DNA of 64,000 nucleotides from Hyphochytrium catenoides (lineage: Eukaryota > Protista > Hyphochytriomycota). Positions within the stretch are counted from its first letter, which is position 1; every line of letters starts with the position of its first letter. A model generated the notes under the pieces. It was not told the origin of the DNA. It did not search any database and was given only the letters and a program-made list of their open reading frames with translations. Both the position numbers and the translations under genes were made by a program. Below are positions 3,361-26,756 of the stretch, one piece after another. The DNA lies in contig FLMG01001584.1 in assembly GCA_900088475.1 (NCBI GenBank), positions 41,010 to 105,009 of the forward strand, given 5' to 3'.

Positions 3361-6300
3361 TTACTCTGTTGAAGAGGTTAAGGATAGAGGGCACACAGCC
3401 GCTCTTTCCTTAGCGGCTTCCTCTGTTCTGTCTGCAGCCTCACAATTATCGATGCTCTCGCAGTCATTTACAGAGAGTGAGATTGTTCCATGTGATAAGC
3501 TCTTTTGATCGAGGTATGAGAGGGAAAAGGAGAAGGAGTCCGAGCCTAAGAAGCCAGGAGGTGGGAGATATCGGACTATTCTTCCCCTTTTGCCCATCAG
3601 GAGATGTTGTCTTGGCTTTTCGCCTTCGATCCCCGTCATAAAGTTGGGCTCCAGCTTCACACAACGATTCATAATGGACAAGATTAGGGGTAAGTTCTGG
3701 TTAGAAAAACGTCAAATCAGAGTGACGTGAAGTATTGTCCATTGTAAAGCATCGCAACGACAGAAACGATGAAAACCGTGTGTAAAAGCGTGACACCGAC
3801 GGATTCGTTGGCTACAGAACCTTACCGTGCTCGGCACCAGGTCCGCCGTATACCGCCCTAGAAATCTATCGAAGCCTAGCATCGGAGATAGCTGACGACG
3901 ACGGATGGCAGAGAAGCAGGTGATGGAGATCGGAATTAGAGGGCAGATGAAAGACTATATGTTGAGGGATTGCGGTGGTCTAGAAGGAAAATCGGTAGGA
4001 CACAGACAAGCAAGAGACTAGATACTTGTCTCAGAACATTGCCCTTTATGAAACGTAACCCTCTATTGGAGGAAATGAGAGGCTTGTAAGGATCTAAGAG
4101 CGACAGTCGCGTAGCGCAGTCGCCCTTAAAAGGAAGACAAGAGTTCCAAAAACGCAACAAATTTATGCGCCAAACTCCTTTTATCATGCGGGAGAGCGAG
4201 GATGGGCTAGCCATTACCTTCGTTCCCGCGATCACTGGGTGATCAGCACTGCACAAGTCCGTCCCTCTAGCGTCGTTAGCTTCTCCTACATTCAGGTACA
4301 GAGCGCCATGTAGAGGTAATGAGTTGATCTCGGCTCTAATATCCATATAGTGTTCATGCTTGTTGCCTACAGCCCAGATGAAGGTTTGCCAAAACGATAT
4401 TAGAGACAAGCAAACAAAATGAGACCCCTCTCATCCGGCAAAATGGAGTCCCATAAAATAGTCGAAATGGATGGGATTTAGCTATATGGTACTTAGAGAC
4501 CTGCCGGATCCGTGATAATGAGGACATATTCGGCCAGGGCTCCTTTGTGAGCAACACTATTCCGGCTCGACCGGTCCAATGCAGAAGGCGATTGTGGGGA
4601 GAGTGACATTGGATCGCCCTTTTTTCCCCGATCCGCTATCCTCAAGGTCCATTGGCCTGAGCCTTTCAAGCCTCCAAAGGCCTCCGCTAACATTTCTCGA
4701 GAGTCGTATGGAAGGGCGCCTGGATTGGAACGGCTTGCAATGGGACTGCCGCCCTGTAAAAGGGCAGAAAGGCAGGCAAGGAACAGAGTTATCTTTAAAG
4801 CTGCACTGCCATAGTTGGTAGTGGCATATAAAAACAAGAAAAAACGGACAATCCTCAGGCATGAATAGCACCAACCTCGTACACAGTCGCCGTGCGACAT
4901 ACCTCGTAATCAGCAAGGGGCCTATGTCGGAGCTCAAAGACCTCAACCTCCGCAAGTGAAAGTACCACTGGCCTTTCAGACCCCCCTCCCATTTTCTGGA
5001 GTCGAATGTACCTACAAAACGTCTCCACTGGGAGGATCATCGTGTTTTCTCGTCCTGGCTCAGAGAGCCGCCAAAACCATACTGGCATAAGTACAGAGAA
5101 AGAGTTAAAGGTCGAGAAAGTTGACCTAGCGGAACTACTTGCTATTACTCGGTATATACGCATACCCGCTCTGTCTCTTGAAGCTTCTATCCCAGTTAGG
5201 TTTTGGCCGTCAGCAGTTTCATTGAAGGCCATGACCCAAATGGTTGACGAATCATTATCCCTTGCCTCATATGGAGCGGTAGTGCTCAAACTGACATCAA
5301 TTTGAACCTATTCAGGGTAACATAAAGTTTGGACCCGATGATAAGCTCAAGACTGATAAAGTAATAGTGCTTTGACATAGGCAAGGAGCATTTTCCGATA
5401 AGACTAGCTAGAGCTTGGAACGGTGCAAGTTACCTCGGATGCCAGAGGTTGTAGATCATTGGAGTGTAGAGCAATAATGGGTGGGCTGTCGGGCCCAATA
5501 AATGATACAGTCCATTCATAAGCTGCACGAAAGAAGAACATGGAAGCCAGTTAACCCAGGTCTATTAGATGATGATCAGAATATATATCCTATGATTGGT
5601 AAATAACGGGAAATGACCTCTCAAAGGGCGGAAGATATGCGCCAAAATCAACAAGGGCAATGCAATGCTTGGGAAGTGACAATATGACAACCACTTAGAC
5701 AAACCAGCTGTAGGAAGTAACGATATCTATTGCATACCTCCCGTGATCATATCAGGCCCTCTGCGAATCACATTTACAGCACGAACCATATCCAGTGCTA
5801 GGAGCTTGGACTGCATAGACTCCCCTCTTCCTAAGCCTGAATCCACCCTCCAGGGGTCTTCGTCTTTCGGACGAGGAAGAACAGAAAGTGGAAAGGCGCA
5901 ATATTTATAGAGTGAGTGAGGAAACCTAACGGACATCTTTATATCAACGAGCATAAGGGAGATATGCCAGAGGGATTCTGGCGTGACTCGCTGCTTGAGT
6001 GCCGGCAAATAGCGTTCAGCATGAACGTGGATGAAGAAATGCACTGGCAACAGTTATGCTACTTTTGAAAAAAGGTCATCCAGATGCAAAGCGGAGATAG
6101 GAATCACAACTAGACTAAGTATGCTCTAGGGTTCCCTCACCTGCTGTTTGTGCTACAGCGTTGAAGCTGATTGGTCCTGTGACCTCAATTACTCCTCCCT
6201 TCACGCATTGTAGGCTGAACGTCCCACTGACCGTAGAAGGCGAAGAGATACGGATCACAGAGCTTTCCCTTTGATAAGACTCTTCTTCTTCCAGCCAAAC

Positions 6301-9300
6301 CTTGATTATTGCCCGCACAAGCATCAGGTAGGTGATCAGAGAAGCTTACTTCCTTACTCAGCACTGAATCTTGCAGTTGTTGATGGAAGCCCAGTGCAAG
6401 GGTAGAAAGGCAGTATACAAGGCATACAGTGTTACGATTCCTACATACCTTTATCGTCCCAACTCTTGTTGTCTCTCCAAGGTCAACTTCCCACCATGGG
6501 TCCACATCATTAAGTGCCGTCCGAGTCACCGAACCCTTTATGATATGGAATTTAGTCGTTAGGGACTATAATATTCTCTGAGAACGCAGGGGTCCCTCTT
6601 CTGTCTGTTGGCTGTCTAGGATCTTGATTCTCGCAAACATTTAGGGGTGAACTCGGGCTTACCTGAAGAAAAAAACCGCTTCGGTCTCCATCAATTGCTC
6701 TATTTGCGTCGGCTCCAAAGCCAAGGGAGGACTGGTAAGCTCCTCCTCGCCTAGCTATATTAACTCCTGGAAAGTCTTTGAAAGAGTAATCCCAGCCTTG
6801 GCCAGCGATGACACCTGACACCAGGCGGGACGGGCCAAGACTGCATATTGGGGGCCACAGCACGATATGGAAAGGGAGGAGTTGTCACCATCACCATGAA
6901 ACTCTGACCAGAGAAATGGAGAAATACTACTACGGGATCTGCTGAGCCGGTGATAAGGAATGTTAAGGGACAGAGGGAGCATACAACCCCATTCGATACG
7001 CAGAACAATGAACGGTCTAGTCCCTTAAGTGGAAGGAGTAACAAATTCGCAGAAGAATCCGCAGCACTACCTCGTTAGCCCATTGGGCTCCCCAAACATC
7101 CGCTGTCTTCCTTCCTGGTCATAAAGAACAGCCTCTCTCGCTTCATGGGAAAGAGCGAAAGAGAGGTTCCCAGCTTCCTCATGATAAAGTCCTCGAATCA
7201 GAACCTCCAGGTCAGCCACCATGTTCAGCCTACGGTTGAATGATGATGGTGATGAAGAGAACTGAAATGACGATATGACGCTTGACGACGAGGTTGTAGA
7301 CGGTAGAGTCAGGATCGCGTCAACTCCTGGGAAGGAATGTTGCTGGTACTTTCTCTTTATGCTTCCTCCGTTTAAAGCCAAAGAGGTTGGCGAGAAGTAA
7401 TTGATATCTGTCGCAAAAGAGGTCAGTTAGTACAAGCCGAGAGGGAGGAAGAACCATCAGAAGCGCTAGAGATTTTCCCAAGCGTGAAAGCCGTAGTGCT
7501 AGCTTTAACAGTTCTCACCGCCATAGGTTAAGATTTTCTCACCATCAACTTCGTCGGCGTGAGTAACGCTGTAGCGAAAGTAGACTCTTTGCCCGACTGT
7601 TCTCCAATAAGAGGCCTCAGTGGGCTGACCATCTCGGCGCGTCAAGAGGGTAAAAGTGGGAGACCCGGTAACAACAACCTCATGAGAGAACTCGACAGCC
7701 AGCTCGACGAGCTCCCCAGAGACATAGGTCCCATCCTGCACTGTTGGATAGAAGGTCGAGACAAAGGGTGCAGAGCTATCCAGCTTTATCGCCCGATACG
7801 AGGAGAGACAGCCTTTGTCCCCTCGATAAAGCGGGGAGGACGGAGCTGGTAATGTGATATTCTACGAAGATATGACGGAACGAGCAGCGAGAGTTAGGAA
7901 GCAGATTAGAAGTATACTATGAGGACAAGCTAATCCTTAAACATGCAGACGAATTTTGATGGGAGCTGTAAATGGGGCGTAAGCACTACTCACTGCCAGA
8001 GTATTTGGAAGAGTGGAGACTGCATATATTTTCCCATCGTTCAGGACTAGAGCGCTGCCTGCCATACATCTCGTTCCTGGCACCTCCCATGGCTTGCAAG
8101 ACCTTACGTAGTCCAGTCGTGAGGTGGAGTCCTCTACATTCGTTAGAGCAAGAGTCAATATTTCAATGGTCGTCTATCTAAACCACTTATTCCCACCTCT
8201 TTGGACTGTTAGCTCAAATCGAAGAATATTAGTTCCAGACCCGCTGACATAAATGGCCGGACGCGGAGCGGGTTGGGTATTCATCCATAACGCTGGCGGA
8301 TCAGGCCCCGACATTTGCAGAAGTACTGGAGAGTCAAATGTTATCTGCAGAGGTATCATTTGGCCCCAACCATATATCCCGCTAGGGAGGGGGGACGATA
8401 CAGAGGTAACTGACGGCGGCAATGTGCTAATTTTGATCCGTATCCGGGTCAAGCTGCCCATTGTATCCCCCGCGGGGAGGCGTAGGTCAACTAAATAGCC
8501 CAAGGCTTTCGTCCGAATCTCCCAAGGCACCACTTCTGCTAGTCTTCCACCCTCTACGGCCGGTTCAGCTTCAGGGATACTATAAATCAACGACCTTTGG
8601 TCCAGAACATCTAAAGGATTGGCCGCGTCGTTCTCTTGGACAATGTATTCGAACATCAGAGTTGCTGTGTTACTGCCGCCGACGTACGTTGCCTTCACTG
8701 GAGTCAAGTGCTGCGTCGGCCCAGACATTCCGGTGGAATCTCCAGCTAAGCAGCCAATGAGGTAAGGAGGGGCTTGAGTCGCATAGTACGCATAGCTTCG
8801 TCTTTCGTCTGTGTTCCCTTCAAAGGTGCCGTCACTAGATCTTTCTTCTTCCCGTCCATTACAATCGTCCAGTTGCGCAGCTGTGCGGTTGTTGTAGACT
8901 TTGGGCTGATAATATATCGGAAATCCATCCATAGCATATCCAATAAGAAGCCTGTCCTGCCCTTGGGAAGAAGATGAGCCATACGAGAGCGTGGCCAAGA
9001 GGCATGAAGAAAGCCTAGTGTAGTGATACCTTACAATGGAGAATGGAGGAGTTACTTGTTACTGCAACGTTTACATAGCGGTTGTCTCAACTATCTTTGC
9101 AATGTCAAAAACAGTAGGTAAAAACAACCAAACTTACATTCCGTTTGCATCCGGCGCCCCAGCGCAGCTATCCACGCTCAGGTATCCAGGGCCATTTGTG
9201 CTTGTAACATCATTATTGAACTCGTCCCGGTAGAACCTGATCGGCACTCCATCTAATCCAATACCTAGTGAAAAACGTTTAGGATTGCTCTTAAAAGCAG

Positions 9301-12300
9301 GTGAGACAGCTACCAGCTATACAAGAACTATTCACCAAAAAGGAACCAGAAAGCAGAACAAATTGACGATTTGGCCCCTGATAGATCGTCAGGACAAGTA
9401 GAATGGAGTGAGATCACTTCCATCGTGTTCAAAAATCGTGGTGAAGGACGGCGTGCTCAAGTACACAGCTCGAAAACAAAGGAGCAACCTGAAAGTTCTC
9501 GCTCCTGCAGTGGGCGTTGGTAAGGTGCCTTCCTTGGATATCTTGGAAATGAGAAGGTCCGATTGGCACTAACGACCTGCCACGGATTGTCTGGGCGGCC
9601 ATCTTCATCTCTATCATTGTAGTCCGGAAAGAGAGTCCCTGACATCAAGTCACAGCTACAGTCGCTCCTCACTTCAACTGTGGGATGCGATGAGTTTGAG
9701 ATCACCACATCATTGACTCCACCCCTACCAACAATCCACCCTATGGAGGAATCTATCACTTGAGTGCCTTCTTGCGCTGCAAAGAATTATAGGTCAGGTC
9801 TACAGGTAAATGCAAAGTTACAAGACGGATAAATTTCAAAGCAGACGCTCACCGAGTGGTCTCTGGACATTGAGGGCCAGGTCTGGCTTGCCGGCAACAA
9901 TAACAGGTTCGGTGAATGTCACAGAAATGGGAACTATCTGGTCTCTTCCGTACGTGCCCGGAGGAAGGGACGATGAGACAGAGAGTATAGAGGCAGCACT
10001 CCCTGCTATAGATATGCTGCCTCTGCCTCCCCCGCCTTCCAACGTAAAGTATAACGTAGAACCTGGCAAGGTAAGATCCGCTGGTTGTCCGGACACCTCC
10101 GCCCACCGCACAATATCCCCCACAAGTGCGTCTTTGGAATACGCAGCCAGGGATGAGCAAAAATCCTTCGAGGAGACGCTGAATGCAAATGACAAAGTGT
10201 CGGTCATGTTGCCTCCTGCGTGGGATGTAGCGTCAGACGGACCACAAAGTGCTAAGAGCTGAGGAGAGGTACTTTAGGTCCACAAGGGCATTGAAATTGC
10301 TTCTGTACAGAGTTAAAAGCTAAAACAACTCTGGAGAGATTAGGTGAAAACCTTGACTCGGGGTACACACGACATACCAGTAAAGATGGCCTTAGACTGA
10401 ATGGTGTTAGGAGAGCAAAGACGAAGGGTAGGAAACCCGGATCGGATCTATGGAAGAGATGGAACCATCGTTAGCCCTACAGTGCGAGACATTGGAACCA
10501 AATCAAGAGACCAAACACATGGGCGTAGGATGAGAAAGCGGAGCAGCAGAAACAACTAGGAGGGTGCAATTTTGTCAAATCCGGGTTGGCCAGTAGGTGA
10601 GGCTGAACTTGGTAAACACTGACCATGACCGTCGCGCTAAAGCGGACATGAAGAGTGAGAGCGGACCCTTTCGAGTATAATCCCGGAGTCTCTTTGGTGA
10701 AGAGCGAAAGGACCTTCGGTGGACCGGAGCTCACAGAGAGTCGTGACTTTGATAAACTACCAGGGCCACCTATGGTCATGGGTTAATCAATCCACATGAC
10801 TTATATAGACTAGAGGCATGTTTAGCATTCCGCATCTTAATCAAATTTCATACCGGGTGCAGGTAGGGTTAAATCTGCTGGTTGAATAGAATTTGTGGAC
10901 TTCCTTAAAACCACGCCTGGGAATGAAGGGAATGACAGAGGTAGCGTTACAGGAGGGTGAGACCAACCTCTATGGACCAGTGACCCATTTAAACCTAGCT
11001 TTTCCTTGGTTCGAACCGATAGCGGCTCGAGAACAAGGCACTCCTCACCTGACAAGGACGAACTAGCAAGGTAGTCCAATAAAGCGATATTGTCTCCGGG
11101 CTGCACCAGATACTTAAGAACTATCCGAGACCCCTCCGTGCGTACATAGGATGCGGATCGTCCCACATTCAAAGCTAGGTCCAGACTCCCGTAGGGCATT
11201 TCCACCTCGGCAGAGAACTGTAGCGATAGAAAGATTGACTCCCCTGGACCACTTGAGATACCCGTAGTGTTTGAAGACACAGAAAGGATGCTTGGTGGGG
11301 ACGAGTCAACAATAATTTGGCGTACGTAGGAAAGACTGCCTGCAGTACCGTACAGTGATATGTGGCAATAGCAGTGGAATGTAGTGTCAGCGCTTTCAGC
11401 TTCCGAGAATGGAGGGAGATGAGGTGAAGCAATCTAGCAGGCAACGCACATAGATTGCGATAGATGGCAATAAGATCTGGTTTTACCTTTGCCTCTTGGA
11501 GGAGGGAGCCGCGTCGGCATGTAAAACCCATCCTTCGTTAGGAGGTGCTCAAATGGAAGTGACAAAGCTGAGGAAGAGGAATAGTCCAGTGGAGAAGCGC
11601 TATGCCCCAGGCTGCAGTACAAATGACGATTAGCCAGCCTCACTGCGATAAATGGATAAAAAGATTCTCTAATACGCCCTATCCTCCCGTTTATTCTGGA
11701 ATACTGCCGCAGTGCGCAAATTACCCGTTGCCCTTCAACTCCAACAGCCAGACTTACCTGACAGTGTACACAAATGTGACGATATGTGTGCCGTTACCTC
11801 CTGCATACGGTGCTGGGCTGACATCTGCTAATCCTGGTCCTGTTTGCAGTAATAAGGACGGAGGAGAACGCAGCACGACTGGACTTGAAAAGACGACCAA
11901 GACTTCTACTTCCTCTCCTACTCCAATCCTTCCTCCATCATGATTAGTGAAAGTATAGAGTACTCTTTCTCCATCCGTTCGGAGTGCGATTCGGCCTCCC
12001 GAAGCTACTACCCCCCTTCGCTTTAAAGAAGGTGAAGGTGCAGATGGCTTAGGCAGAGACAGATTAGCATCAATCGTGGGAGATTGAGATGCTAACCGAA
12101 TCCATGCCTGGCAAAGAGAAGATTGGCAGATCTGACTATCCTCGTCCACGTCTTCTTCGCTAAACCACCTCTTGTTCCGCACTAGAAGGGAAGATGTCGT
12201 CTCATAATCTAGCAGCCCTGTAATGGGTCCTCTGTCTTTCGTACTATCGCCTTCCCGGACGGTGTACTCAAAAACAAGGCGATTAGTTCCATTCCCTTCC

Positions 12301-15300
12301 TTGAAACCTGCGAAAGCCGCTTGGAGTTTCAGGCTAGGGAACCGAGAGAAAGAGAGGACAGAACTGAATCCACTATACGAAGTACTGATGCCCAGATAGA
12401 GTGCGGGAAGGCCCTTGACGACTACCGGTCTAGAAAACACCACTTGGAGTTGGAGTTTTTCTCCGGTAGAGTATACCCCCGAGGGTGATAGAGATGAGAC
12501 AGCGAGCACCGACGGGGGTGTACTGTCCAACTTCAGCTGCGCACTGTCGCTCAAAGAGTTTGCGCTGCCGGGAACTACCGTCGTGGCGACAAATAAGGGG
12601 TATTCGCATGACAATAGGGAAAAAGGGTACTGTTAGGGACACAACAGACGCAAAAGTCAAGCTTGCGCAAGTATAAAGAGCAATACTACAGACCAAGGCA
12701 GGACCAACCATGCGAGCTGCTCCCCGGGGAAGCGACGAGAGGCAGACGAAGCACCAAAAGGATTGACATAGGAGGACCCTAAGACAGCATCAGCAACTTC
12801 TTTGCCAAACGTCTCACCTGGACATCTTAGAATGGCATCCAATACTGGGACTTCAGTCTTCTTCGTGATCCTTCCTCCGTGAAGCCTGAGGGGTTCGGTG
12901 TACCTCTGAGACGAGGTAGACCTGTCATCTACGACATCGAGCCGGCCTGTTGCGTCACGGAAAGAGACGATGTATCTGCAAGAACGAGGTGATGATGGCT
13001 GAGAACAAGGATATCGCGAGAACCAAAGACTTTTTATCACGGTAAGCGGGGACCACAATAGAGGCAAGCAGGGCTCACAAAAGCTATAGAGAGACAGAAC
13101 TAAGGTGCGGCAAAGAAGGGACCCTACAGTGGATATTTAAGGACAATCCACATAACAAAAGGGACTTGTATAATATTACATACAAAACGGGGACAGGCTT
13201 CAGAGTTACAGAGTATCAAGACCACGTACCGAAACCTAATAGTATCAGTTCCATTTCCTTCAAAATAGTCCGCATAACCGACTCTTTCTTCGGCGACAGA
13301 AAGGGCGAGGGATGGGAGTCCATAGATAAGCACAGGAGCCGAGAAAACCACCCCAAGAACTAGACGATCGCCAGCAGAAAAGGTTCCGGAGGTATTGAAG
13401 CTCATTAGGCTTAGCACCTAGCATATAAGCAAAGAATGCATGGAAAGATTATAACGATTTGCTCCTCGCCAGTGTTCCAAAACCTGCTGTGACTCCCAGT
13501 CCCCAGTCCCTGGCCGATGCATGTTCTCTTTCTTAGCCTATGTCGTCATTGGTGCTCTTACCTCTGGCTGTGTGGTTTGAAGCTCTATGTGTCTTGTCCC
13601 TCCAAGGGAATTTGCTGATAGTCCACAAGTCAGATAACTCTCAGACACCTTCAACTAAAGCTGTGGCTTCAATCGCCCCAGAATTCTCAAAATACGAGAG
13701 TGATAGCCAAACGAATGATAGACAATGTAAGGTCTAAGATAGCTATCATGATAGAAATACCTGAAAGCGGAGGCGGCAGATTAAGGTCCGCATCAGTGAC
13801 CGGCAAGGCCGATAATCGGCGGATCATTGCGCCATTTAGCGACAGAGACAGACTGTCTTTGTACTCCAACACGGGTAGCTGATCCGAGGTGCGGACTGCA
13901 TAGCGAAACAAAAGAACCGCCGTGCCATTTCCACCTACATAATAAGCGCGCCGGCCGCTATCTCCTTTCTCCTTAGGGTAAATCGTGATGACGCTTCCAG
14001 TAAGCGCAACAAATGGAATCCCTGCACCAAGAGGGGGCGGCACGTGTTAATTCAAGGCAGGGCACTATGGACACGACGTGCCGCCAGCTTTTGGGGGAGG
14101 GGTGTCTCCTTAGGGAAAAAGACGCTTCACAAAGGTAGCGTATGAGCACTGAGCAAATATGATTGTGCGGATGGAGGAGTCATGTATAGCCAAGAGGTTG
14201 AGGTGTCAAGAATCAAGAACACTCATAGCAATCGATGGGAGGATAAGAGAAAATAAGTTACCTTGGCCCAGCACTACGACGGGCATAGAAAATGTGATGG
14301 TGATATGGATTACATCGCCATAGCCATAAAGGCCATCAGGGTTGAGGGCGGATACCCGGACAACAGCCGGAGGGTTCGTGTCGACCACGACGAGGGACTG
14401 GGAGAGGGATCGCGGATCTGACAGAGAGGGCGAAGGCAAAGGAAGCGTGGCCAGTCGTGTGCCGAGGTCATCCCATAGTTCAACTCCTTGTAGCTCCAGA
14501 GCACTCGTAGATGCAACATCTAATGACGATGCGACTGTAGTATCTCCTATTTGCAAAAGAACGACGAGGCAAGCTTAAGGACAAGCTCCACAGCAGCTAT
14601 GTGTTTCTTAAGGGAGAACTGTTAGCAAACAGAACTGGATACAGAAGAAGTATACATGGAGTAGAAATGATAAGTAGTGGGAGAGTATGGCGTCAGATGG
14701 CGTAAAATAGCTGAGAGATATCTCCTACCTGGCTGTACCACGTATTTGAATTCGAGAGTATCAACGGCGACAGGAGGTACGCTCCGTAGAAGGGCCAATC
14801 GACCATTAGATAGTTGTAGACGGGGCCATAGAAATGAGAGAGGAGTCCATACCCTCTGCGCTGAATCGAAAAACTGATGCAAAGAGAGCGCAGGGTTAGT
14901 CGGCCTATTTGGGTCGAAGGACCACCGTTTAATCCTTGATTATGTCTTTGCACACTCTTTGACTTTATGGCTGCTCACTACTCTCAGCTCTCGCTTGTGT
15001 CATAGCCCATTCTTTGAAGCAATTCGCCGCTACTAGCAGTAGAAGGGTAACGAATGGCAGATGACATTTCCCTCAATTCATCACCCTTTTCGTACCTTGA
15101 TTTGAATCATTCTAGTTCCATGGGGCCCCTCCTCCTCCCACACTGCCAAGACTGCATCTCCGCTCGATCCCAAGAAAGGACAAGCAACTGACCTTTCTGG
15201 ATCGACATTCAATGGTCTTCCAATCGTCCAGAAATCGTCTTCTCCCCCTTCTTCCATATCCAGCTCCTGATCCCAGGATAGGCTACCATCATTCCACCTT

Positions 15301-18300
15301 GCTACCCGCAGTCTAGGACTCCCCCATGGAACAGAGCTATCCAGATAGGAAATATATAGAGAAGATCTAAACTCAACTAGTGACGGGGAGAAAAAGCGTG
15401 AATCAAACACCGTCGAGAAAGTAGCACTTGTCGTTGAAGATTCATGTCCAAACTGAGGCGTATTGACGGCTAGGGAAGACAGCAAGAGCCATTCCTTGTC
15501 CCCTTCGTTTCTTGATAGAGACGCAGCCCATATCAGAGAAGATCCATTTACTTCCTGTTCCTTCCAAGATAGCAGAAGTCGGGCGTCGTCTCTCCCTTGC
15601 CTGGCTGTGTATAGACGAGGATGGGCAGAATACGATGAAGCTGACATTGCCAGCCCTACGGAAAAAGAAAGAGAACTCTTTCGGTAAGGGACATGAAGAG
15701 ACAAAGTAAAGCAGTGGCCAGAAGAAGGAGGGCATTACGGCGGTGGCAAAGACAGTAATGGCGAAAAGCAAATGACCTAAGCTCCACAGCCAGCCTGTGG
15801 CTCTGATACTTCCCACTTACCGCCCTCGTCTCTTAGTCCTCTATCCATCCTTCTCCAATAGGGAAGAAGAGAGCCCTCTTCATGTTCTGAAACTCGTATA
15901 ATGACCCTAGGACGACTTGACGAAGAAGGAGATGTCGTGCTGGGAGGGAGTAGCTGAGACCATGCTAAATAAACTCTATTTCTGTAGATAGAAAGTGACG
16001 GAGAGAGAGCAGAAAGGCGATCTTCTCCTTGCAATCCCGCACTTCCTTCACCGCCGTCTATGAGCTTCCAGGGGAACTGTATGGGTCTAAAGGATTTTAC
16101 TCTAACCTACGGATGAGAGCGGCATTAAAAGAGGATCAAGCCAGTTGCAGGAAGAGAGCTCTTTAATTTGTAGCTTCTTAACCACGTAAGGTAAAATTCA
16201 ATTCCTTAGAAGCAAGCTTGAAGGAACTATGTGCGACGCCGGTATGTACATTACATGGGTTAACATTAGATGGGTTCACCACAAAGGAGAGAAGGCCAGA
16301 AGAGGACGTGAGAAGGCCAGAAGAGGACGTTAATCTAGAAAAAAATAGGTCCACAGAATGTAGCCCGAGTAAAAGGGCCACAGGTCCACAGAATGTAGCC
16401 CGAGTAAAAGTCTCTTACCCTAGAAACTCCAAGGGGATTTCGTTCTTCCCAAGCGCAGTATATTATTCCGTTATGCGAGGCTAAAGTGGGTGACGCTGCT
16501 GCTCGGGACGAATAAACATTCAATCCGGTCACGCCTGCTCCGTCTAGGGACTGCCAGCTTCCTGCCAGGAATTCAGGTTAACTTAACAGAAGCTCGAAGA
16601 TTTAGCATTACTAGCTGTCAACAAGAAATAAAAAGAGCATACCAGGGGTAACACAAAAATGCAAACGCCAAGCTCACCAAGCACTAGATTATAGAGAGAC
16701 GCTCTGACTTGCGGCACGCCATCTGCACCAGGCTCAACCCAAGCAACAATTGGGTTGTCCTCATGCAAGGCAATTGTCACGTCACTTGCTGTTCTCGCTG
16801 CGTCTCTATTAACTCTATCCGCAAGTCCTCCACCCACGAAGGAGATTGACGTCGAGGTAAGAAGCGCCGCTTGAACGTGACTAATTCCTGGAGTGGAAGT
16901 TTCTTCTGTCCAGACTAAAAAGACACTAGACGGCGACAGGGAAGTTAGAGCTACGAAAGACGGATGCTGTCCATCTTTGTCCTTTTCTCTGTTAACGCCT
17001 ACGACAACCTTCACCTTCCGTCGGAACTTGGCGGCAATGTTTACTACTTCCCCCGCTCCATAGGTTCCTGGGGCCAAGTTTGTAACCCAGACTTTCTCGG
17101 TCACAATAGGCGCTAGATGTATGGAAAAGACGAATGCAAAGGAACAGCCGTTAAGTGCAGCCCGGCTGATTTATTTTACGGTCCGCTTTTGCCCCCAACT
17201 TTCACTCTTTCTGTGATCAAAGGATGACAACTCCCTTACCTTGAGTATCAATACTCCAGGAGACTTGGTTCGACAAACACTTCCCTACCGTGAATGGAAG
17301 CGTCATATCCGCATCACCCTTGGGAAGAGACGAGGAATCCAATATAGAAACAATACCGTCTCCCGTGGGAAGAGAGGAAATAAGAGCACCATTGAGCGAG
17401 AGGGCAGAGGGAGAGGAGAACTCAAGTTCAGCAACATTATCTCCTTCTCTGATCGTGTACCAAAATGTTAGTAGCTCATCAGTACTTTCTCCTTCTTGAA
17501 ATATTGCATCTCCATTAGTGTTCATTTTGATGGTCGGTGTGCCTCCTTCGACCGCCACTTTCTTACTCATCTGTAGGGAGAAGCTTAAAACGCCTGGAGG
17601 AGAAGTGAGCGAAGCCAAGTAGAAGCCTTTGCCGTACACTCCTGCAGGTGCTGACGTAAGCACGGCAATCACTTTTGGAGGCCGGGAGTCTATTGTAATA
17701 GCACTGCTATCCTCCAGTCTCTGCAACGAGATGGGAAGGGGGAGAGAAACATCTGCTTCTGTTTTAGGGTTCATAGAGAGGCGAAGAATTGCTCCCTCAT
17801 TGACATCCAAGGAGGCACCTGGAGGACAAGAAAGAGTCCAACGCTGTTCATCGGACGGAACAACGAAGCGAAAGTTGACACTGCGGCCCTCCTGAACCCT
17901 TCTTACTGATCCAAACAGGGGATCACAGTCTTCCTCGTCGGGAGGGTTGAAAAAGGGAGAGACAGGTTGTAGAGCATGTAGAGGGAGATGCGATGGTGAT
18001 GGCGCAAACGTGACGGTGTAGCGAAAGCCACCTACAGTTGGAGAAGAAGTCACGGTAACAGTCCCGCCGAGGGATGCAATGCTCGCAAGACGAGAGAGCT
18101 CCTCCAATAGAGCTCCATCTTCTCCCGAAGCTTTGTCATATTTTATACATCGGGTAACTTCATTTCCATATTGGAGACGATACTCTCCAGATACGGGAGT
18201 TGAAGGTAAGTAAAGAGTGAAGGGCGAGGGAGATAAATTGGGGCCAATTTCTATCACTTGCACTAAGCCAGCGAGAGAATACTCGGCTTCATGGCCAAAG

Positions 18301-21300
18301 GCAAGCGGAAGAAGAGGAGAGCCCCGAACCAGTACCGGGGCGGAGAACTCCGCGACAATGTCCACAATCTCTCCCGGTATTACCTCGGGAGAATCGGGGT
18401 GACGACTGTAGATCCTCTGAATGTACGGCGGCGTTGTGTCGATCTTAAGCCTGTGAGAGACCGAGAGGGATTCAGGACTTCCTGGTGTTGGAAGGAGTAG
18501 AAGAGCTCTTTGTCCCACCCATCCGCCCCTCGAGAGAGAGGAATGAGAAGCGGACAATATACTGCCGTATGGCGTTGCAAGAGAGAGTGAAGGATTTCCA
18601 ATCTCCACTGGGTCTGCCATGTCACCTTCCCTGACAGTGTATGCGAAGGTGAGAGCCTGAGTGTTGTTCCCTTCTGTATAAGTAGCGTTACCAACATTTA
18701 GAATTAGTATTGGCCTTCGCCCTACCACCCTTACTTCGCTCGTCCAATGGACGGTGATTAAAAGGCGATCCCCGGCTGCGTAGGTGCCATCTGCTAAGGA
18801 AGTGGAGAGATGTGACACTAGAGGAGGAGTAGGGCTGTGAACATTGGCGGGAGTAAGAGCAGGTAAAGAAGTGTCACTACCTGAGGAAGGAAGGCTAAGA
18901 AGAGCGTGTTGAGGGGATAGAGTTGATGCGCGCCTGACATCACCGGCCAGCGAAGAGGAAGCGGGATAGGTAAGAAGCTGTGTCGAGTCCAACGGTTGTA
19001 CCTCGTATATGAACGAAAGGGTTTCGCCTTGAACCCATTCGGGTAGATAAACACTATTTACCGTCAAAGCGGGGCCATCCAGACAAGATGGACAATCTAA
19101 AGGGAATGATGAGCACTCTGGACCCGGAGAGAGAGCAAAAACTCGACCTTCATCAGGATCTCGTCCCTCCACGACGAGTGATGACGAACTTGACGAAAAC
19201 GTTATGTAGTACCGACGTGTGAAAGGCAAAAAAGTTGAGTCCACGCTTACGCTCACGTCCATGTCGGCATCCAGCAACTCCTGTAGAATAGATTCCAACG
19301 ACACGGAGGCAGGCAGAGAGGGCAAAGAGGAAGCAGGAACATTCCAGTCTACGCAAGAAGAAAACCCCTGGTCCCCATACAGGAGCTGGAAACTCCCTGT
19401 TTCTGCCCTGACATCCACTGTTTGGATGGTGGCGACCGGTGGGGCACAGCTGTCGTCCCACTCCGGGATAAGCGGAGCAAGAGGAGGAGATACGAAAAGA
19501 ATAGTAGTCCTTAAACCGTTCCCATAGGTCTGGATATTCACCTCCTTTATTCCTATGGTTCGGAGTTCTGAGATGGCTTCCAAACGCTCTCTCAAAGAGG
19601 AAGGCGATCGGCTCTCCGCTAATCTGTAATCTATGCATGCGGAGAGACTGGACGAGTACCTTAGCCGGTATTCCCCATATATTAGTCGCCCAGGTCCTTT
19701 TACGCCAAAGTCGATTATCTGCAAAGTGCTACCTCGAGTGTAGACCGCTGTACCTAACGAAAGGGGAAGAGTCGGAGAGGAACTGGCAGGGACAGTCACA
19801 GAAGATGAGAATTTTACAGCTATCTCCAGAATCCCTGGCTGCGGCTCTTTCTGTTCTTTCTCTCCCTTGTCTCTGTTCACCAGGATTGTCCACCAACAGT
19901 TGGGGGGAGCACAAGAATCTGAGGGGTTAGAACATCCCTCGTAGTCAACTTGCAGTGCCAATATAGATTGAGAAGGGGAAGCAAAAGTAATATGGTAGCG
20001 GTGAGTTGTCACCCATTGAGAGGAGAAGCTCTCTTTGCTGACAGAGACTGATAGAGCCAGGGAAGAACTGGCTTCCAATGACGTCTTCACGGAAGCTGCT
20101 GAGTCGTCCCAAGCAAGGCATTCCGTGGGTATTCCCCCATAGAGTAAACGGAAGGTGCTTCCGGCTAATGTCGCAGATGGACTGGAAGACAAGTCTACAG
20201 TTTGAATCATGTCCTTTTCTGAGTAGAACGGACGAGGGTTAAGGATGGAAACTGCTACTATAGATGGTGGAGATGTCTCGACGACAATCTTGTGAGAATA
20301 AGAGAGGCTCCCCGCTCTGCCAGGATTGGGAAGATGCAGCGAGGCAGAACGAGAAGGGAGGAAAGCTCCTGCTCTAATACAGTCAGAAGTAAGAGAGCTC
20401 CACTGGGAAATGCTAGAGGCTATTGCGGAAACCGCTCTGTAGACCGCGGCTCTTGCAACTTTTCTGGAGGTGTCAGGCTGGTATTCCTCGGACCAAAGGA
20501 TGTACGTGCGGTCACCGTCCTCGAAACCTTCGGAGCTAACAAGCGAAGACGAGCTTGCACCCATGTGTGGGAAGAGGTTGAGTCCTCCTTCTTCACCTCC
20601 GGGAAAGACCACAGAGCTAGAGTCCACGAAGCGAGATATTGTTGTCGCTTCTCCAAGGTCGAATTCTCTGACCCTTACCCTCATTGGTATGCTGGGGTCA
20701 GAGGCTTCCTCCCAACTTAAAAGTAAACTCGTATCGCCCTTTCCTACGACCAGAGAGGGTGCTCGAGCAACTCCATTCCTGTCCCAGTTTAGGCCCTCCC
20801 CCATGTCTAGAGAAGACAAGCTGAAGTCCCTTTTATTGTAAGCTGATAGGTGAATGACGGAAGAGCCTAATCTTTCTTCTACCCAGGCCAAGAAGAGTAA
20901 CTCTGCCGTCTGCGCCATGGTGGGCTCCATGGCAGAGTGAGAATTATCATGGTTGAAGCTTTCTCCGTCTGGAAGGACAGGGAGCCATCTGTTTGGACCG
21001 GAATGGTAGGCATATACCCTTACCTGTTTAGCCCCGGGGATCCCTCCAATCTCTTCTTCCCAGGCACAAAGGAGATTTCCTTCTTCATCTCTAATAGAGA
21101 GGACCGGATTTCGCGCGTTTGCGGATGGGTCATAATTTAATGGTGCCCCGAAATCCCTGTGGAGAAACCTCCAGGTATCGCTGTGAACGGTCCAAGCAGC
21201 TACACGGATCTGCTCGACTCCGGCGCCCGACTCTTCTGTCCAAGTCACATACATTACTCCGTCCAAAGCTACAGCTCTGGGACTCTGAGCACTTCTTAGT

Positions 21301-24300
21301 GGATTTAGATTCACCCCTCTTCCTCCCACCCCTCCATCTATCGAAGTCCAAGAGGGTTCGTTGTTATCATTGTTATATTGTGCCACTCGAATCTGCCAGA
21401 CACTATCAATGGGGTTCCATTCGTGCCAGATAGCCATCAAAGTCGGGGTCGTAGGAGAGGATACAGGAGAAACAGACACCAATCGCAGTCCTCCGGCAGG
21501 TTGAGAGCTGTCAATAGCAAGAGAAGATGAACCTGTCACATCACTCCAGCTTGGACCCAGGAGAGATGGATCGAGTTGGACTGAAACACGCAGCAGAGAT
21601 TGACCTCCAGCCACTTCTACTCTTCCAGCATATAGCAACCCCATATGCTCGACACCTGATACCGCCACTACGGAGAGAGACGACGGCGTGAGGAGGGGCC
21701 CCAGATAGTCCAGACAGACGAGAGAAAAATGCCCTGCATAATCCAATGTTGGGGAAGAGTCTCCTTCCTGCACCTCATAAAGAAAGCGGAGTTCTTTGGG
21801 TGACATTTGACGATATAACGGCAGAACCGTGTCATATTCTTTGCCGGTTCTTATGGCTAAAGACACCTGACCGTGACTGCTGGGAGTGATAGACACAGGA
21901 GACGAGAAAAATACGGATATCGGAATGATCTCTCCCACTCCATAGGTTCCACTCGGTATGCTGCTATTCACCGATGATATAACTGTGACGGCGTTTGCAA
22001 TGCTTATTCCGAACGTCGGGAAGAGACGCAGCGGGGTCCCTGACAGACTGCGGAGGAGTGTCCGAGCTTCAGTGGTAGTAGACGCCTGCACTATTGATGC
22101 GCCTAGTGAAATGGAAGTGAAGAGAATGGTTTTTCAGGTAAGCTAAGCTGCTTCCAATGCGATCGAAGGCCAGGCTGAAGCTTTGGATAACAACAAACGT
22201 TAACCTCAGGTGAAATACGAGAGGACTAAGTGCACAACGTGTTAGCTAACTTACCTGAGGGTAACTCCAGAGCAGTGTCGCCTTCAACATCCACTACTGG
22301 TGCACTGTCTCCCAGATTCACCATGTACTCAAATATGCAAGTCCGGCCCCCTTCCATTCGAGAAAATGGTGCCCTTCCGATCCGTCCTCCCAGCCTGAGA
22401 GACATCACAGGAGCGCCTATGGTTCCAAGAAGCGTACGTCAATAGGTATTACTATCGAGAGAAGGCATCCTGCTGAAAGCTGGGCGACAGAAATGAAATC
22501 TACATTGGGAAATATGGGCCAGCACAGGACTTGACATCTCAAAGGGACAAGGTCGTGGGAGAAGGGTAGAGGTTCCAATATAGGAGAGAAAGGAACTTTG
22601 GGTTTTAAACCTGTGACATCAACGTCGGCCTGGAACACCACAGCTATCGGGATTATTTGCCCTGCAGTGTAAATCCCGTCCGGGACCAATGGGTAGAGCT
22701 CCTCCACAGCGTTTACGGTGGGGCTTAGAGTGATTGCGGACAAAGATGCTGCAGGCAAGAGCAGCTCCGCGTGGGTCATTGGAGAACCAGACGCCTTCTT
22801 GATGTATGTATCCTCAATCGAGCCGTAGAGAACTGTTAGCCCTCGAGCACCCTCTACGTCGAGTCCCACAACCGAGTCATATTCTGTGACCTGAAACCGA
22901 AAAAGGAGCGTATCCCCTTTATCAGCTCCAGCTCCGTCACTAGTAGATAGCGACGACGATGCAAAGTCACTGAGCAAAAAAAATGGTGCGTAGGCATCCT
23001 CCCGAGGAAGGTCCAGGCGTATGGCTGGCGTTCCGCCTACTACCACTTCTGATGAGAAGCGGACGCGGATCACTATGTCGTCTCCAACGGTGTAAATGCC
23101 AGGCCGTGTGACAAAGGAGACTGAGAGGACAGAAGGTGGTGTGGTATCCAGCGATATTAAGGAGGGAGAACTAAGAAGCCCTCCAACATCAGCACCCATC
23201 GGCAGCGTGAGAAGAGCGCTTGTCGTTGGTTGGTCTGACTTCCTCTTAACCTCAAAGTTACCTGAAATAAAAGCTGCTCTGTTCAGCACATCCACGGCTC
23301 CTATAGTATCCCCTGGCATCACTCTAAAACGAAATCGAAGAGTGGACGAATCACTACTGGCAACATAATCTGCCCTTCTTGACCCTGGACCATACAAGGA
23401 GAGTGCTGGAGAACCTGAGTACTCGTTCACAGCCACAATAGTCCTGCCGCTGTACACCTCAAGCGTGTGGAGAATGTCTCCTTCTACCCTGTCCACAGTG
23501 AGAAGCTGGCCATCCAAAGTAAATTGCATTCCTTGAGCGTTATCAGTCGTGAGCCCATGGGAGGAGAGCGAAGGAGACCCGGAAGGGAGTGTAATGATCG
23601 TGCTTCCACTGGCGGCTGTGACAACGGAAGTTCCGGGTGGCAAGATTGAGGCGGTTCCTGTTCGGACTAGGATGAAAGGGACAGATCCTAAGCCAGGAAC
23701 AACGACGACAGGTTCAGAAAAAGTAACAGCTAGCTCCACTATGTCACCAGCGTAGTATGGAAGGAATGAGACAGAGGTAGACGCAGAGGAGGGCTTCACA
23801 CTTGTGATGTGAGGGGGTTGTGTGTTTAGACTGAGTTGGTGGTTAAAGGAAAGACTGCCTGTTGAGTTAAGGGAAGAAAGAAATTGGAACGGTCAGTAGA
23901 AGTATCCGGCCGGTGTCTCTTTCCCTCCTCACCCCTCTTATGCAAGGACCATTAACCACACCCATTTGCTTGCCATCTTTGACTTCCAGGGCTGCCCGTC
24001 CTTGTTAAACTGTATATCCTTCTTCACATCAAGTTCTTCGTTCTCTATCTTACTCGAACTCTAGTTGATCATAAACCTATAGAACCCTTCCGACCCTTTA
24101 TTTCAGATCATTCCTCTGTTCCCATTCTTTTCCACAGGGCATCGTTAACTGGCTCTGTTCCTCACTCTTTCTGTAACGACCCCAATGTCTACTCGTCGTC
24201 CCATGACCTCTATATGAAGCCACAGCGGACTCTATTGAAGCAGAGTTCTCTATTTATATACCTGGCGATCCTGGCGTGGGAAGGAGTAGATTGGCTGGTG

Positions 24301-26756
24301 TCGATGGAGACGTAGAAGAACGTAGAATTGTGCTAACAGACCCCAGATTAAGAGCATTTTCATCCATGTAAGAGAGACGAAAGGTTGCATCACCCTCCTT
24401 CACTGTGTAGAGGAAGTAGATGGAAGAGCCTTCTGTTTTTACATACAATGCCTTTCGCCTAAACACAATTTAATGAGCAGGCGGGATGACAGCTAAGACC
24501 TAGCTAAACAAAGCACCCCCCTCACAAAAGTAAGCCAAGGGAGAAACCAGTCCGTTAAAGAGCTGGTGACTAATTGCACAGGACCGTGGAGGAAATTAAC
24601 AAGGGAAATCCCATACCAGCCCCCATTCTCCCCTACCAACCTGAAGGCCGTGATGTTCGTTACAGCTCCCCCACCGACGTCCATTAATATAGCTGGATAG
24701 CAGGAAAAGCTCACGGGACAACCTGCGGAGAGAGTGTGAGGGTCGACAACCAGGGTAAAGCAGCCAGGTGGCGAAAACTGGAAAGCCAAAAGCCAATGCT
24801 AGAGGAACGAAGAAAGAGTTAGCAGTCAAACGAACGGAACAGAGAGTGCCTAGAAAGCCACAAGGGTAAATGAGTAATGCATCATAAGGAAGTAGGACTT
24901 GAGGCCCAGAGTAAGCTGTCAGCACCAGGTCCTGGGTTGACTGTAACTGGATGGTTGAATGTCACAATGACATGGATTCTCTCTCCAGCTCCTATAACCC
25001 CTTCCACGGGCTGCCCACTCTCAGACTCAACTCGCACGTCCAAAATTTGAGGAGGTGATGTGTCAATGACAATGTTGCTAGTTATACTAAGTGAAGAGTA
25101 CGTCCCACGCCTGACGTCACCTGCCAGCATAAACACCGTTAGATGGCGAGAAAGAGTAGTGTGTTAGATATGCGCTAGATAAACGGTTGGCACATTGAAA
25201 CCGGTGGTCTGCCCCCAACCTCAGAGGTAGCTGCAGAATATTGAGCTCAGAACCGCCAAGAGTAGCTGCTAAAAAGATGCTATGGCAGTGGCCTGCTTAT
25301 ACCTGGGTGTCCTGGAATAGGAAGCTTGGGGTTGATCGGCGTGTTAGTAACGGCAGCAAGGATCTGATCATCGTGCTGGAAGAGGGAGTAGGGTCCAAGG
25401 TAATCTAGCTCAGGTGAGTTATCACCGGGCTGGACCGTGTAGCGAAAGGTCAGAGCGTCCGTCGGAGGGGAAGGTGGAAGCAATAGAGTGGCTCTAGCAT
25501 TTTGCTTTCTGAAACCTTGGACGACCTCAGTCACTACGATTGAAGGCGGGGTCTCTCCTCTTATCGTCAATTTGGAACCATCTCCTTTCCTATTGTCGGG
25601 GTCGATGACAAGGAGTGGGAGATCTCCATTTTGCTTGCTCATTGCGATGGAGGATAGAAAAGTGATTTGAACTTCCCCGCCCTGAAGAGAGCAGACTTGT
25701 GGTCCTGGATTAACTTCCACTGCAACCGCTTCGAGATTGGGCAGAGTCTCTAGGTACGTCTGGAGATCCGAGGCGGTAGAGGAGAAGGGTATGTTGCTTA
25801 TGGTCTTTCAGCAACGGCCAAAGAGGGATATGTATGTGTATGTATGTAGAGAGAGAAAGAGCAGGCTTAGTAGATAGCTATCAGGCTTATTCAAAAGAGC
25901 AATACTGAACAAGTTGCTCGTAAGAGGTCACCCGAAGGGATGGCAGAGAGACTAGCAAACCAAAGCGTATTTGCATGCTCATCCATGTAACAAAAACTTA
26001 AGGCCATAATCTTTTACCTGTCCATCGAACGAAATACCAAAATGGCCTCCATCAGCGATGCAGCTGAACGACTGGACCTCGTGGACCGTGCAAAGTGTGG
26101 ACGAACAGCCCGTTCGAAGCTCCAGCTCGGCTGGGTGAAGAGGGTCCAGACCTAGAACAAAAGTATCATGGTATTGAAGAGGTTTCGTTAGGTTGAGAGT
26201 CCATCAGAAGATGCCCTCACCCTTTTGCTGAAATGGAGCAACCTTGTTTGAGGACACATGTCCGTCACAGGGTAAAAGTCGCCATAGCCTCAAACGACCG
26301 GGGGGACGGAAGGTTCAGGGAAGAAAGCAGAAGACAAACAGAACCCAGAACCACAGAAGGATGCCAAAGGAGCATCTTATTGAGAAAGAACTTACGAATA
26401 ACATTGACGGGTGAGCTGAGTTTGACGTAGATATCAATGACTTGCCCAGCACCGAAGGTGCCTTCTGAAGGTGAAGAAGTCACAGATACTATCTTCGGAG
26501 GGCCAGAGCCATTCAGTATAATCTTTCGTTCTGGCACCTCCACTAAGAGATTGAGCTCGCCCCCCTCAGGGATAGGAAGTACCGCTGGCAATGAGATATC
26601 AAGAGGTGCACTGCGAGTAGTTTCTAAACGAATATCAGGAGCTATGGGTACAACCAACTCCCCACAAACCAGCAACGCAAAGGTAGCGACTAGAGCCAAC
26701 GTTAAGGACAATGTAGTCCACTTAGCCGCGGGATGGTTTCCGGCAGCTAACCCCAT
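3361..26756 (-). CDS. Giant multi-exon secreted/surface protein (roughly 5,000-6,000 aa): ~20 Ig-like GxYxxG repeats with inserted beta-propeller, xVQ and YHYH domains, then P-domain, fucolectin-like and C-terminal Ig-like domains
   Basis: N-terminus has a hydrophobic signal (MGLAAG...LSLTLALVATFALLVCG). Co-oriented ORF fragments joined by GT-AG introns repeat the pattern PPxVxxVxSxxxxGxYxxGxxIxIxVxFSxPVxVxGxPxL...LxFxYxVxxGD...LDY...AxLxLP from 26.5 kb down to 7.3 kb. One exon is 4863 bp (17240-22102). The exact 3' end (~3260-3361) is uncertain, and not every junction was traced. Confidence 0.8.
4940..6760 (-). other. Fucolectin/F5-8 type C (FTP)-like domain of the giant protein, interrupted by an insert
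   Basis: NIARRGGAYQSSLGFGADANRAIDG, DPWWEVDLG...GTIKV and CRYIRLQK...LSLAEVEVF match the F-type lectin fold signature. Confidence 0.75.
8730..9780 (-). other. YHYH-family domain inserted in Ig-like repeat ~18 of the giant protein
   Basis: Spliced sequence reads IGLDGVPI...VDSCAGAPDANGMYHYT...LLIGYAMDGFPIY...LDDCNG...YAYYATQAPPYLIGC. Confidence 0.8.
15090..16970 (-). other. Beta-propeller-like insert 2 of the giant protein
   Basis: Repeated ~55-aa units such as VNRDAARTASDV...IVAWVE...QVRA, LNVYSSRAAASPTL...YCAWEE and LNVDPERSVACPFL...LAVWEEE. Confidence 0.65.
16289..16410. repeat. Two adjacent short direct duplications in an intron (2 x 21 bp; 2 x 29 bp with 35-bp period)
   Basis: gagaaggccagaagaggacgt at 16289 and 16310; aggtccacagaatgtagcccgagtaaaag at 16347 and 16382. 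Confidence 0.9.
20400..21690 (-). other. Beta-propeller-like insert 1 (about 7 blades) of the giant protein
   Basis: Units of the form LNx(5-6)AxxPxx...hhhxWxE...hRV: AIWHEW, VTWTEE, CAWEEE, LAWVEE, LSWEE, ILWSEE. Confidence 0.7.

Follow-up and report, generated by a model that had tools for sequence, protein, structure and literature searches.

A giant multi-exon gene of Hyphochytrium catenoides for a predicted secreted chain of Ig-like repeats with nested domains, conserved among stramenopiles

Giant adhesins made of immunoglobulin (Ig)-like repeats are well studied in bacteria. They include giant surface proteins such as the RTX adhesins LapA, SiiE and MpIBP, and their repeat arrays act as extracellular stalks that carry binding modules. 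In pilus adhesins of the RrgA type, from Gram-positive bacteria, a functional domain is inserted in a loop of an Ig-like stalk domain. Here we describe a gene of the protist Hyphochytrium catenoides (Hyphochytriomycota) located on the minus strand of a 64,000-nucleotide (nt) stretch of DNA, hereafter the window (contig FLMG01001584.1, positions 41,010 to 105,009, assembly GCA_900088475.1). We consider it probable that a single gene of about 40 exons codes for a secreted, anchor-less scaffold or adhesin of about 5,500 amino acids (aa), formed by a chain of Ig-like domains, that it belongs to a family of stramenopile orthologues, and that its repeat was probably derived from prokaryotes. In the searches that we made, no earlier description was found of a conserved eukaryotic counterpart of the bacterial proteins with repeated domain-in-domain nesting.

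The predicted protein resembles the S-layer proteins SbsA and SbsC (Big_5) and the SwmB-type SWM_repeat proteins in its long tandem arrays of Ig-like units of about 115 aa each. The likeness to the giant bacterial Ig-repeat proteins is one of sequence and, weakly, of fold (SbsC, FdeC and invasin). It differs from them, however, in that it would be exported by a eukaryotic signal peptide, in that the binding modules lie inside the Ig domains and not at the tip, and in that no RTX repeat family was matched by Pfam on the five large exons scanned. RrgA appears just as a weak row in a Foldseek search and shows no sequence relation; moreover, whereas RrgA has an insertion in a stalk domain, nesting in the H. 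catenoides protein recurs in at least five repeats and is three levels deep near the C-terminus. This repeated nesting of domains is the most unusual trait of the gene.

Open reading frames (ORFs) of 80-1,624 aa, in shifting frames, tile the region from 26.8 kb to 3.4 kb of the window. The signal is on the minus strand only, and a codon-bias scan showed positive coding blocks over the whole of the region. These blocks can be joined solely via GT-AG introns. A splice finder based on dynamic programming, using codon log-odds from long ORFs and self-trained matrices for the GT and AG sites, gave a homology-guided model that runs from an ATG at 26756 to a stop at 3361 and comprises 40 exons, 39 GT-AG introns and 5,565 aa. 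The GT-AG ends are set by the splice method and are hence no independent result. The introns measure 47-403 nt (median 152 nt), the first being readable directly as ...GTCAATGTTATTC|GTAAGT...TTCTAG|, and the chosen exon path has no in-frame stops. The sizes of exons and introns agree with the averages that have been published for H. catenoides. The last exons were placed by tblastn with orthologue C-termini, which anchored the model there; the final exon (3654-3361) ends ...SVNDCESIDNCEAADRTEEAAKERAAVCPLSLTSSTE*, at the same stop that the sequence-only reading had given.

The orthologues were found with HMMER, run exhaustively with a 1,200-aa part of exon 9 (the largest exon of the model) as query; a word-indexed search gave only four hits. 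The HMMER search returned 2,138 representatives at E <=0.001 and 971 at E <=1e-10, and the top matches were proteins of 5,000-5,500 aa, collinear over about 900-1,150 residues. Among them are orthologues from Aphanomyces euteiches and A. cochlioides (5,058-5,089 aa; KAH9104640-type, 5,081 aa), Achlya hypogyna (OQR95995, 5,130 aa) and Lagenidium giganteum (DAZ96211, 5,481 aa; a 'YHYH domain-containing protein' in UniRef). Partial relatives were found in Thraustotheca clavata, in Pythium insidiosum and in the ochrophyte Phaeothamnion confervicola. The H. catenoides model is collinear with four of the proteins (5,067-5,481 aa) from aa 26-67 to aa 5530-5546, ending at most 16 residues from their C-termini. 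Collinear high-scoring segment pairs (HSPs) to these orthologues cover 5,441 of the 5,565 aa, both ends match, and 28 of the 39 exon junctions are cleanly spanned by the alignments. The oomycete giants of Aphanomyces, Achlya and Lagenidium, with which the gene shares 27-34% identity over the whole length, have the same order of Ig repeats, propeller, xVQ (a module described below), YHYH and C-terminal tail, as well as a signal-like start and no anchor. They are themselves unstudied and add no functional knowledge. Taken together, this is strong comparative evidence that the region holds one gene, which belongs to a conserved stramenopile orthogroup of about 5,100-5,500 aa.

A homologue on a metagenomic eukaryotic contig (L001:5805-18086, next to genes for a PPR protein, a roadblock dynein light chain and Fringe) appears as two neighbouring ORFs, 2,191 and 1,854 aa long. 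The first has its stop codon within a GTAAG motif, and several GT..AG pairs 120-170 nt apart fuse the two in frame into about 4,000-4,050 aa. Probably, to judge from these splice signals, it is one gene cut in two by a prokaryote-style gene caller. The following elements delimit the H. catenoides gene.

3361..26756, minus strand: whole gene; approximate, from splice modelling that took codon bias and orthologue HSPs as guides.
26658..26756, minus strand: start codon, then an N-terminus resembling a signal peptide (aa 1-33, of which aa 13-31 form the hydrophobic core), from translation and a hydropathy scan.
17240..22102, minus strand: exon 9, a single exon of 4,863 nt (1,620 aa) with Ig repeats 6 to 10, propeller 1 and four xVQ modules; stop-free ORF 22091-17220.
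3361..4366, minus strand: C-terminal tail with a VRYLPPPGFLGSDSFSF motif, then the stop, the end not being hydrophobic; from tblastn of orthologue C-termini (E 3e-8), frame reading and the model.

The chain of repeats was mapped with a profile hidden Markov model (HMM) of 117 positions, made from tandem copies in three metagenomic proteins (P0002-P0004) that had been found with exon 9. This HMM, whose consensus ends YASGSGTSTLTFSYTVAAGD..DLDY...L.LNGGTIKD..GN.A.LTLP., gave 28 matches in the spliced model, each to a whole or a half copy; manual pairing of these yields about 20 Ig-like units. In a strict motif search, the core G.Y..G..I.I.V.FS.PV was found ten times, on the minus strand only. 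Many copies consist of an N-half (HMM positions 1-50) and a C-half (positions 54-116) that lie 50-460 residues apart. The copies of the window are 27-40% identical to eukaryotic and to prokaryote-type copies (alignment A2). The gathering score of PF13205 (Big_5) was not reached by the repeat in the gene's own exons; among the relatives, P0002 and P0004 match Big_5, and P0003 matches Big_12. Also, the language-model (Atlas) neighbours of a clean repeat copy are bacterial clusters with Big_5, Big_12, 'SbsA Ig-like' and SWM_repeat. The repeat thus appears, by its sequence, to be a relative of the Big_5 clan and at most a candidate member. The positions of one clean copy and of the copies split by other domains are as follows.

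25307..26492, minus strand: Ig repeat 1, split by xVQ module 1 and spliced over exons 1-3 (HMM positions 2-50 at aa 89-135 and 54-107 at aa 270-324; xVQ at aa 148-209).
20352..21752, minus strand: beta-propeller 1, with seven blades, set into Ig repeat 6 close to the end of that repeat (AlphaFold2 (AF2) model with predicted local distance difference test (pLDDT) 82 and predicted template modelling score 0.86; VIA-align over model residues 91-557).
18861..20234, minus strand: Ig repeat 7 with three xVQ modules in two different loops (xVQ HMM at aa 1635-1705, 1798-1861 and 1890-1966, E 2e-30 to 2e-21, between repeat fragments).
18456..18818, minus strand: Ig repeat 8, a clean uninterrupted copy (HMM positions 2-114, E 2.6e-14).
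17628..18374, minus strand: Ig repeat 9 with nested xVQ module 5 (alignment A1, AF2 model and VIA-align).
14422..17077, minus strand: Ig repeat 11 with nested propeller 2, spliced over exons 10-15 (repeat halves at aa 2622-2714 and 3069-3142, with blade motifs of the propeller 1 type in the translation between them).
8588..9988, minus strand: Ig repeat 18 with a nested YHYH domain (Pfam YHYH in ORF 8177-8998; repeat halves at aa 4215-4255 and 4522-4560).
4502..7264, minus strand: C-terminal nest after the last repeat, in which a P-domain-like unit would hold a discoidin (F5/8 type C)-like unit and this a weak xVQ-like one (sub-threshold Pfam matches and xVQ profile matches).

In all, at least five Ig repeats are split by nested domains, namely five xVQ modules, two propellers and one YHYH domain. 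Because three of the nests sit inside the single stop-free exon 9, the nesting there is free of the splice model.

The most frequent insert, xVQ, is a module of about 100 aa with the pattern [IVL]Q.[IV]D...G.F.L.YG...T.C......L...L......V.V......G.R..I.F. Five clear copies were found in the model by the xVQ HMM (E 1.7e-17 to 2e-30). In repeat 9, the insert occupies the identical point in all 13 aligned sequences (the gene and 12 relatives, alignment A1). In the first repeat of the metagenomic homologue L001 there is a gap of comparable size, in which no xVQ match was seen. An AF2 model of repeat 9 with its insert (pLDDT 72.8) showed a beta-beta-alpha-alpha-beta-beta unit at residues 57-185. 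A global Foldseek search with this two-domain model was uninformative; VIA-align resolved both domains. Residues 57-185 aligned with the tail tip of mycobacteriophage Bxb1 (9d93) at Z 9.1, with a root-mean-square deviation of 2.9 A and 20% identity over 99 residues, and with the Bxb1 capsid C-terminal domain (9d9w, Z 8.4) and phage Patience (8giu, Z 8.0), about 82-99 residues being aligned across the three structures. The likeness to gp23 extends to the sequence profile: the xVQ profile matched the Bxb1 'tail tip cage gp23' (9d93_Ma) in three stretches, at E 1.2e-9 and 41.3 bits. We conclude that xVQ is a ferredoxin-like module homologous to Bxb1 gp23. Unlike in these phages, xVQ is here nested in Ig-domain loops of a eukaryotic secreted protein, and in stramenopiles it also occurs beside EGF domains. 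Its neighbours in the Atlas and in the AlphaFold database are proteins of diatoms and oomycetes, in which EGF domains are frequent, and a single cluster of Actinomycetota. xVQ, of which several copies lie at 17907-20207 of the window and which has no Pfam family, looks like an unnamed domain family common to actinobacteriophages and stramenopiles. A tie of xVQ to mastigoneme EGF proteins was considered and dropped, as no support for it was found in the literature examined.

Propeller 1 is an insert of about 465 aa, with repeat HMM positions 1-83 before it and 96-116 after it. Its blades follow the pattern KLYA.W.E...QIRVAVYNG.D..P.W.FVDG...G.N.D...A..P. Stand-alone homologues of 420-900 aa (E around 1e-40) carry Big_5 or HYDIN-type Ig domains next to a propeller that itself has no Pfam family, and the Atlas neighbours of propeller 1 are bacterial. 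With more than 20 stand-alone homologues of the blade motif and no Pfam model, this looks like an unnamed family of seven-bladed propellers. A second propeller is predicted within repeat 11 from the blade motifs found there. Apart from this gene, a 2,844-aa NCBI protein (P0024) has propeller blades 35% identical over query residues 215-496, with NHL repeats and no Ig repeat; it may be a paralogous use of the propeller in the H. catenoides genome.

The YHYH domain (PF14240) in repeat 18 was matched at E 1.3e-8 (35.5 bits against a cut-off of 25). In the orthologues, YHYH lies in the C-terminal quarter (E 4e-29), and its flanks are collinear with the gene model. For the C-terminal nest, the Pfam matches were below threshold: F5_F8_type_C_2 at E 4e-5 (24.6 bits against a cut-off of 27.8) from a single 29-aa exon of a domain spread over several exons, and P_proprotein at E 0.11 (13 bits against a cut-off of 21), also from a single exon. 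Weak xVQ profile matches were found in the same C-terminal region of the gene and of four orthologues, with independent E-values from 0.033 to 2.8e-5. Three levels appear to be nested here, with a P-domain-like unit outermost, a discoidin-like unit within it and an xVQ-like module innermost.

At the N-terminus, the ORF from ATG 26756 starts MGLAAGNHPAAKWTTLSLTLALVATFALLVCGEL: a short polar stretch leads into a hydrophobic core of 19 residues, followed by a site with small residues. Hydrophobic signal-like N-termini were also seen in three of the four orthologues inspected (P0167, P0153 and P0005), and the Achlya fragment carries the annotation 'secreted protein'. No hydrophobic C-terminal segment was detected by hydropathy in the model or in four orthologues, and no tail like that of glycosylphosphatidylinositol (GPI)-anchored proteins was seen at the C-terminus, by eye and hydropathy. 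Internal hydrophobic windows correspond to a beta-strand motif of the Ig repeat, or to probable mis-modelled exon ends. The model contains 12.8% Ser and 24 N-glycosylation sequons. Neither RTX nonapeptide repeats nor a C-terminal type I secretion signal were matched by Pfam in the scanned exons of the gene or in the orthologues.

The sequence-only reading had proposed about 20 copies of a repeat behind a signal peptide, spread over many exons, in a protein of 5,000-6,000 aa that has no C-terminal transmembrane helix and no characterised function. The 28 HMM matches paired into about 20 units, the signal-like segment with its hydrophobic aa 13-31, the 40 exons (with GT-AG ends imposed by the method), the 5,565 aa of the model and the hydropathy of the C-termini all agree with it. 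Nor did a characterised orthologue turn up, and papers on oomycete secretomes, on horizontal gene transfer between domains of life and on zoospore proteomes did not mention the protein. Of the proposed secreted rod-like scaffold, one giant, secreted and anchor-less protein still stands; the plain rod does not, at least five of its repeats holding nested domains. Nor is the protein an orphan, being instead the orthologue of a conserved stramenopile family already in the databases.

That family is conserved and already deposited, yet unstudied, and it is present also in unnamed metagenomic eukaryotes and in at least one ochrophyte alga. It occurs in oomycetes that infect crops (Aphanomyces) or animals (Pythium insidiosum) and in free-living relatives. 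Its database names are only 'hypothetical', 'secreted' or 'YHYH domain-containing'. Pfam sees YHYH only, and the family is carried as 'hypothetical' in annotations because it is otherwise invisible to Pfam. What is gained here is a domain map for the family, with one module linked to a solved phage structure.

The origin of the repeat was examined with an unrooted FastTree tree of 312 full-length repeats (about 115 columns), in which 85 copies, from proteins with xVQ or from named eukaryotes, were labelled eukaryotic and 227, from other top hits, prokaryote-like. The labels change 8 times on the tree, against a mean of 74 for shuffled labels, and a single split holds 83 of the 85 eukaryotic copies together with six others. 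Moreover, the eukaryotic copies group by position across species; in one clade (support 86), for example, there is one copy from each of seven proteins. As copies cluster by position across species, the array would have been assembled before the sampled lineages split. The eukaryotic repeats seem, from this tree, to have an essentially single origin.

Relatives of the repeat, of the propeller and of xVQ are mainly prokaryotic or from phages. Most of the 150 listed HMMER matches contain the repeat with no xVQ match, and the three such repeat-only relatives with a checked source were all prokaryotic. One repeat-only relative is a 'PA14 domain-containing protein' of a Clostridia metagenome-assembled genome (MAG). 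In their gene context, one lies by panD, queA and glycosyltransferases and one by a bacterial-type PGI, and others lie on contigs of 3.3-4.0 Mb. The evidence for the distribution of the repeat among prokaryotes thus comes from the Atlas taxa, from the named MAG protein and from two gene contexts. These neighbours and gene contexts bear out the earlier claim of prokaryote-type repeats. An old horizontal acquisition had also been proposed, with a tree of the repeats as its check; the eukaryotic repeats do form one group apart from the sampled prokaryotic ones, but nesting within bacteria was not shown. An old single acquisition is plausible. The further idea that the gene later gained introns fares less well. 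The relatives checked are intron-poor, against about 39 introns in the H. catenoides gene, and the Thraustotheca gene has almost no room for introns because a 3,390-aa piece of it fills a contig of 10,373 nt. As the checkable relatives are intron-poor, the many introns probably reflect an intron-rich genome and not a trait, or a later gain, of this gene.

A tree with two groups and no root could also mean that eukaryotes have the Ig repeat by old inheritance, or that it passed from eukaryotes to bacteria, and xVQ is indeed common in stramenopile EGF proteins. We regard this as unlikely, if still worth serious attention. The named eukaryotic holders of the repeat are stramenopiles only, whereas the Atlas neighbours of both the repeat and the propeller are bacterial and archaeal, from many phyla; the 971 stronger matches of the HMMER search, the lack of xVQ in most of those listed and the three prokaryotic sources point the same way.

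In the preferred reading, the one of a secreted scaffold or adhesin, some 20 beta-sandwich domains, Ig-like and of the Big_5/SbsA type known from bacteria, would form a long extracellular stalk or scaffold, along the side of which many different binding modules, probably for glycans, would be displayed. The protein could then act as a multivalent adhesin or as a matrix organiser of the cell covering. Its repeat would have entered a stramenopile ancestor once, probably from a prokaryote, and the array and its inserts would already have existed when the sampled lineages diverged. A scaffold or adhesin outside the cell is suggested because the protein appears to be secreted without an anchor, has a stalk of about 20 Ig units, is Ser-rich with sequons, and carries side modules whose relatives are lectin-like, on virion surfaces or associated with carbohydrates. 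The adhesive or scaffold role is what we infer from these traits together. The family makes a useful case of prokaryotic surface modules taken up and rebuilt in eukaryotes.

Several points weigh against this reading or its parts. Alignments to orthologues gave no support for 11 of the 39 junctions. These junctions, and three hydrophobic stretches (near aa 943, 3280 and 3415), point to local errors in the model. The three stretches look like exon ends modelled too long, and the gene model is therefore approximate. A single transcript is suggested by orthology alone, and both the signal peptide and the absence of a GPI-like tail were assessed solely by eye and hydropathy. Among the five large exons, Pfam reported no family on the repeat-bearing ones at E up to 0.1. 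Moreover, the Ig-fold match is weak: with residues 1-57 and 185-250 of the repeat 9 model taken as one Ig-like domain, VIA-align gave Z 5.5-5.8 for SbsC, 4.7 for FdeC and 4.1 for invasin, the span with CopC included being 4-5.8; all are Z <6, a range where chance arrangements occur too. The lectin likeness of propeller 1 is unspecific, as hundreds of seven-bladed propellers match it at Z 25-30 (WD40 proteins at 25-28). As for the origin, the 'prokaryote' labels of the tree were checked for three proteins only, and the prokaryotic repeats are top scorers, an unbalanced sample; the direction of transfer follows from breadth only (many prokaryotic phyla against stramenopiles as the sole named eukaryotes), on an unrooted tree. 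Finally, the functional part of the reading draws on sequence and predicted structure.

A bolder form of the same reading, possible though doubtful, is that surface modules of prokaryotes and phages were combined in an early stramenopile into a stramenopile-wide extracellular protein of more than 5,000 aa. With a dozen nested binding domains displayed along the Ig stalk, this protein would build a surface structure typical of the lineage, for example the coat of a cyst or spore, an adhesive pad, or a fibre of the flagellum or cell surface.

We also weighed the view that the protein is mainly an extracellular enzyme complex, in which polysaccharides or other substrates would be processed by the propellers and by the YHYH or discoidin-like units, with the Ig chain as no more than a spacer. 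The best VIA-align match of propeller 1 is an enzyme, CylK (Z 33.5), Foldseek lists sialidases and GH43/GH93 arabinofuranosidases, and the Atlas neighbours include BNR/sialidase-like clusters. However, lectin propellers score almost equally (BP39L, PLL and CV39L, Z 29-30). What propeller 1 shares with CylK and the PLL/BP39L-family lectins (Z 29-33) is the seven-bladed fold, at an identity of only 6-13%, and its blade motif, W.E..QIRV..YNG..W..VDG, belongs to no Pfam family. Also, no catalytic family was significant by sequence, and the invariant W, E, R, N and G recur in many blades, as would be expected of a structural or binding motif more than of one active site. An enzyme complex is, on balance, quite unlikely.

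We think it very improbable that the region contains several independent genes, or one gene and pseudogenic debris. The unsupported junctions and the reliance on orthology for a single transcript leave some room for this; against it stand the full-length collinearity with proteins of 5,067-5,481 aa, N- and C-termini included, the exon path free of in-frame stops and the same domain order in long uninterrupted ORFs of the relatives. Repeats 27-40% identical to aligned copies that include prokaryote-type ones would agree with contamination by bacterial DNA, or with a recently transferred sequence wrongly assembled into a eukaryotic scaffold, but this explanation is practically negligible given 39 spliceosomal-type introns, best matches that are eukaryotic orthologues at just 28-34% identity, a G+C content equal to that of the flanks (0.47-0.51), and three DNA runs of the same organism that hold 73-90% of the sampled words.

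Two soil metagenomes of 2025 (X4 and X5) hold 5-6% of the sampled exon 9 words, which suggests that H. catenoides, or a very close relative, lives in soil. The window has seven assembly gaps (N runs at 2004-2060, 28047-28094, 29962-30042, 38257-38308, 46102-46137, 49836-49853 and 59480-59542), none of them within the gene. A neighbouring gene is marked by a plus-strand ORF at 60059-61021 with strong LRR_8 and LRR_4 matches.

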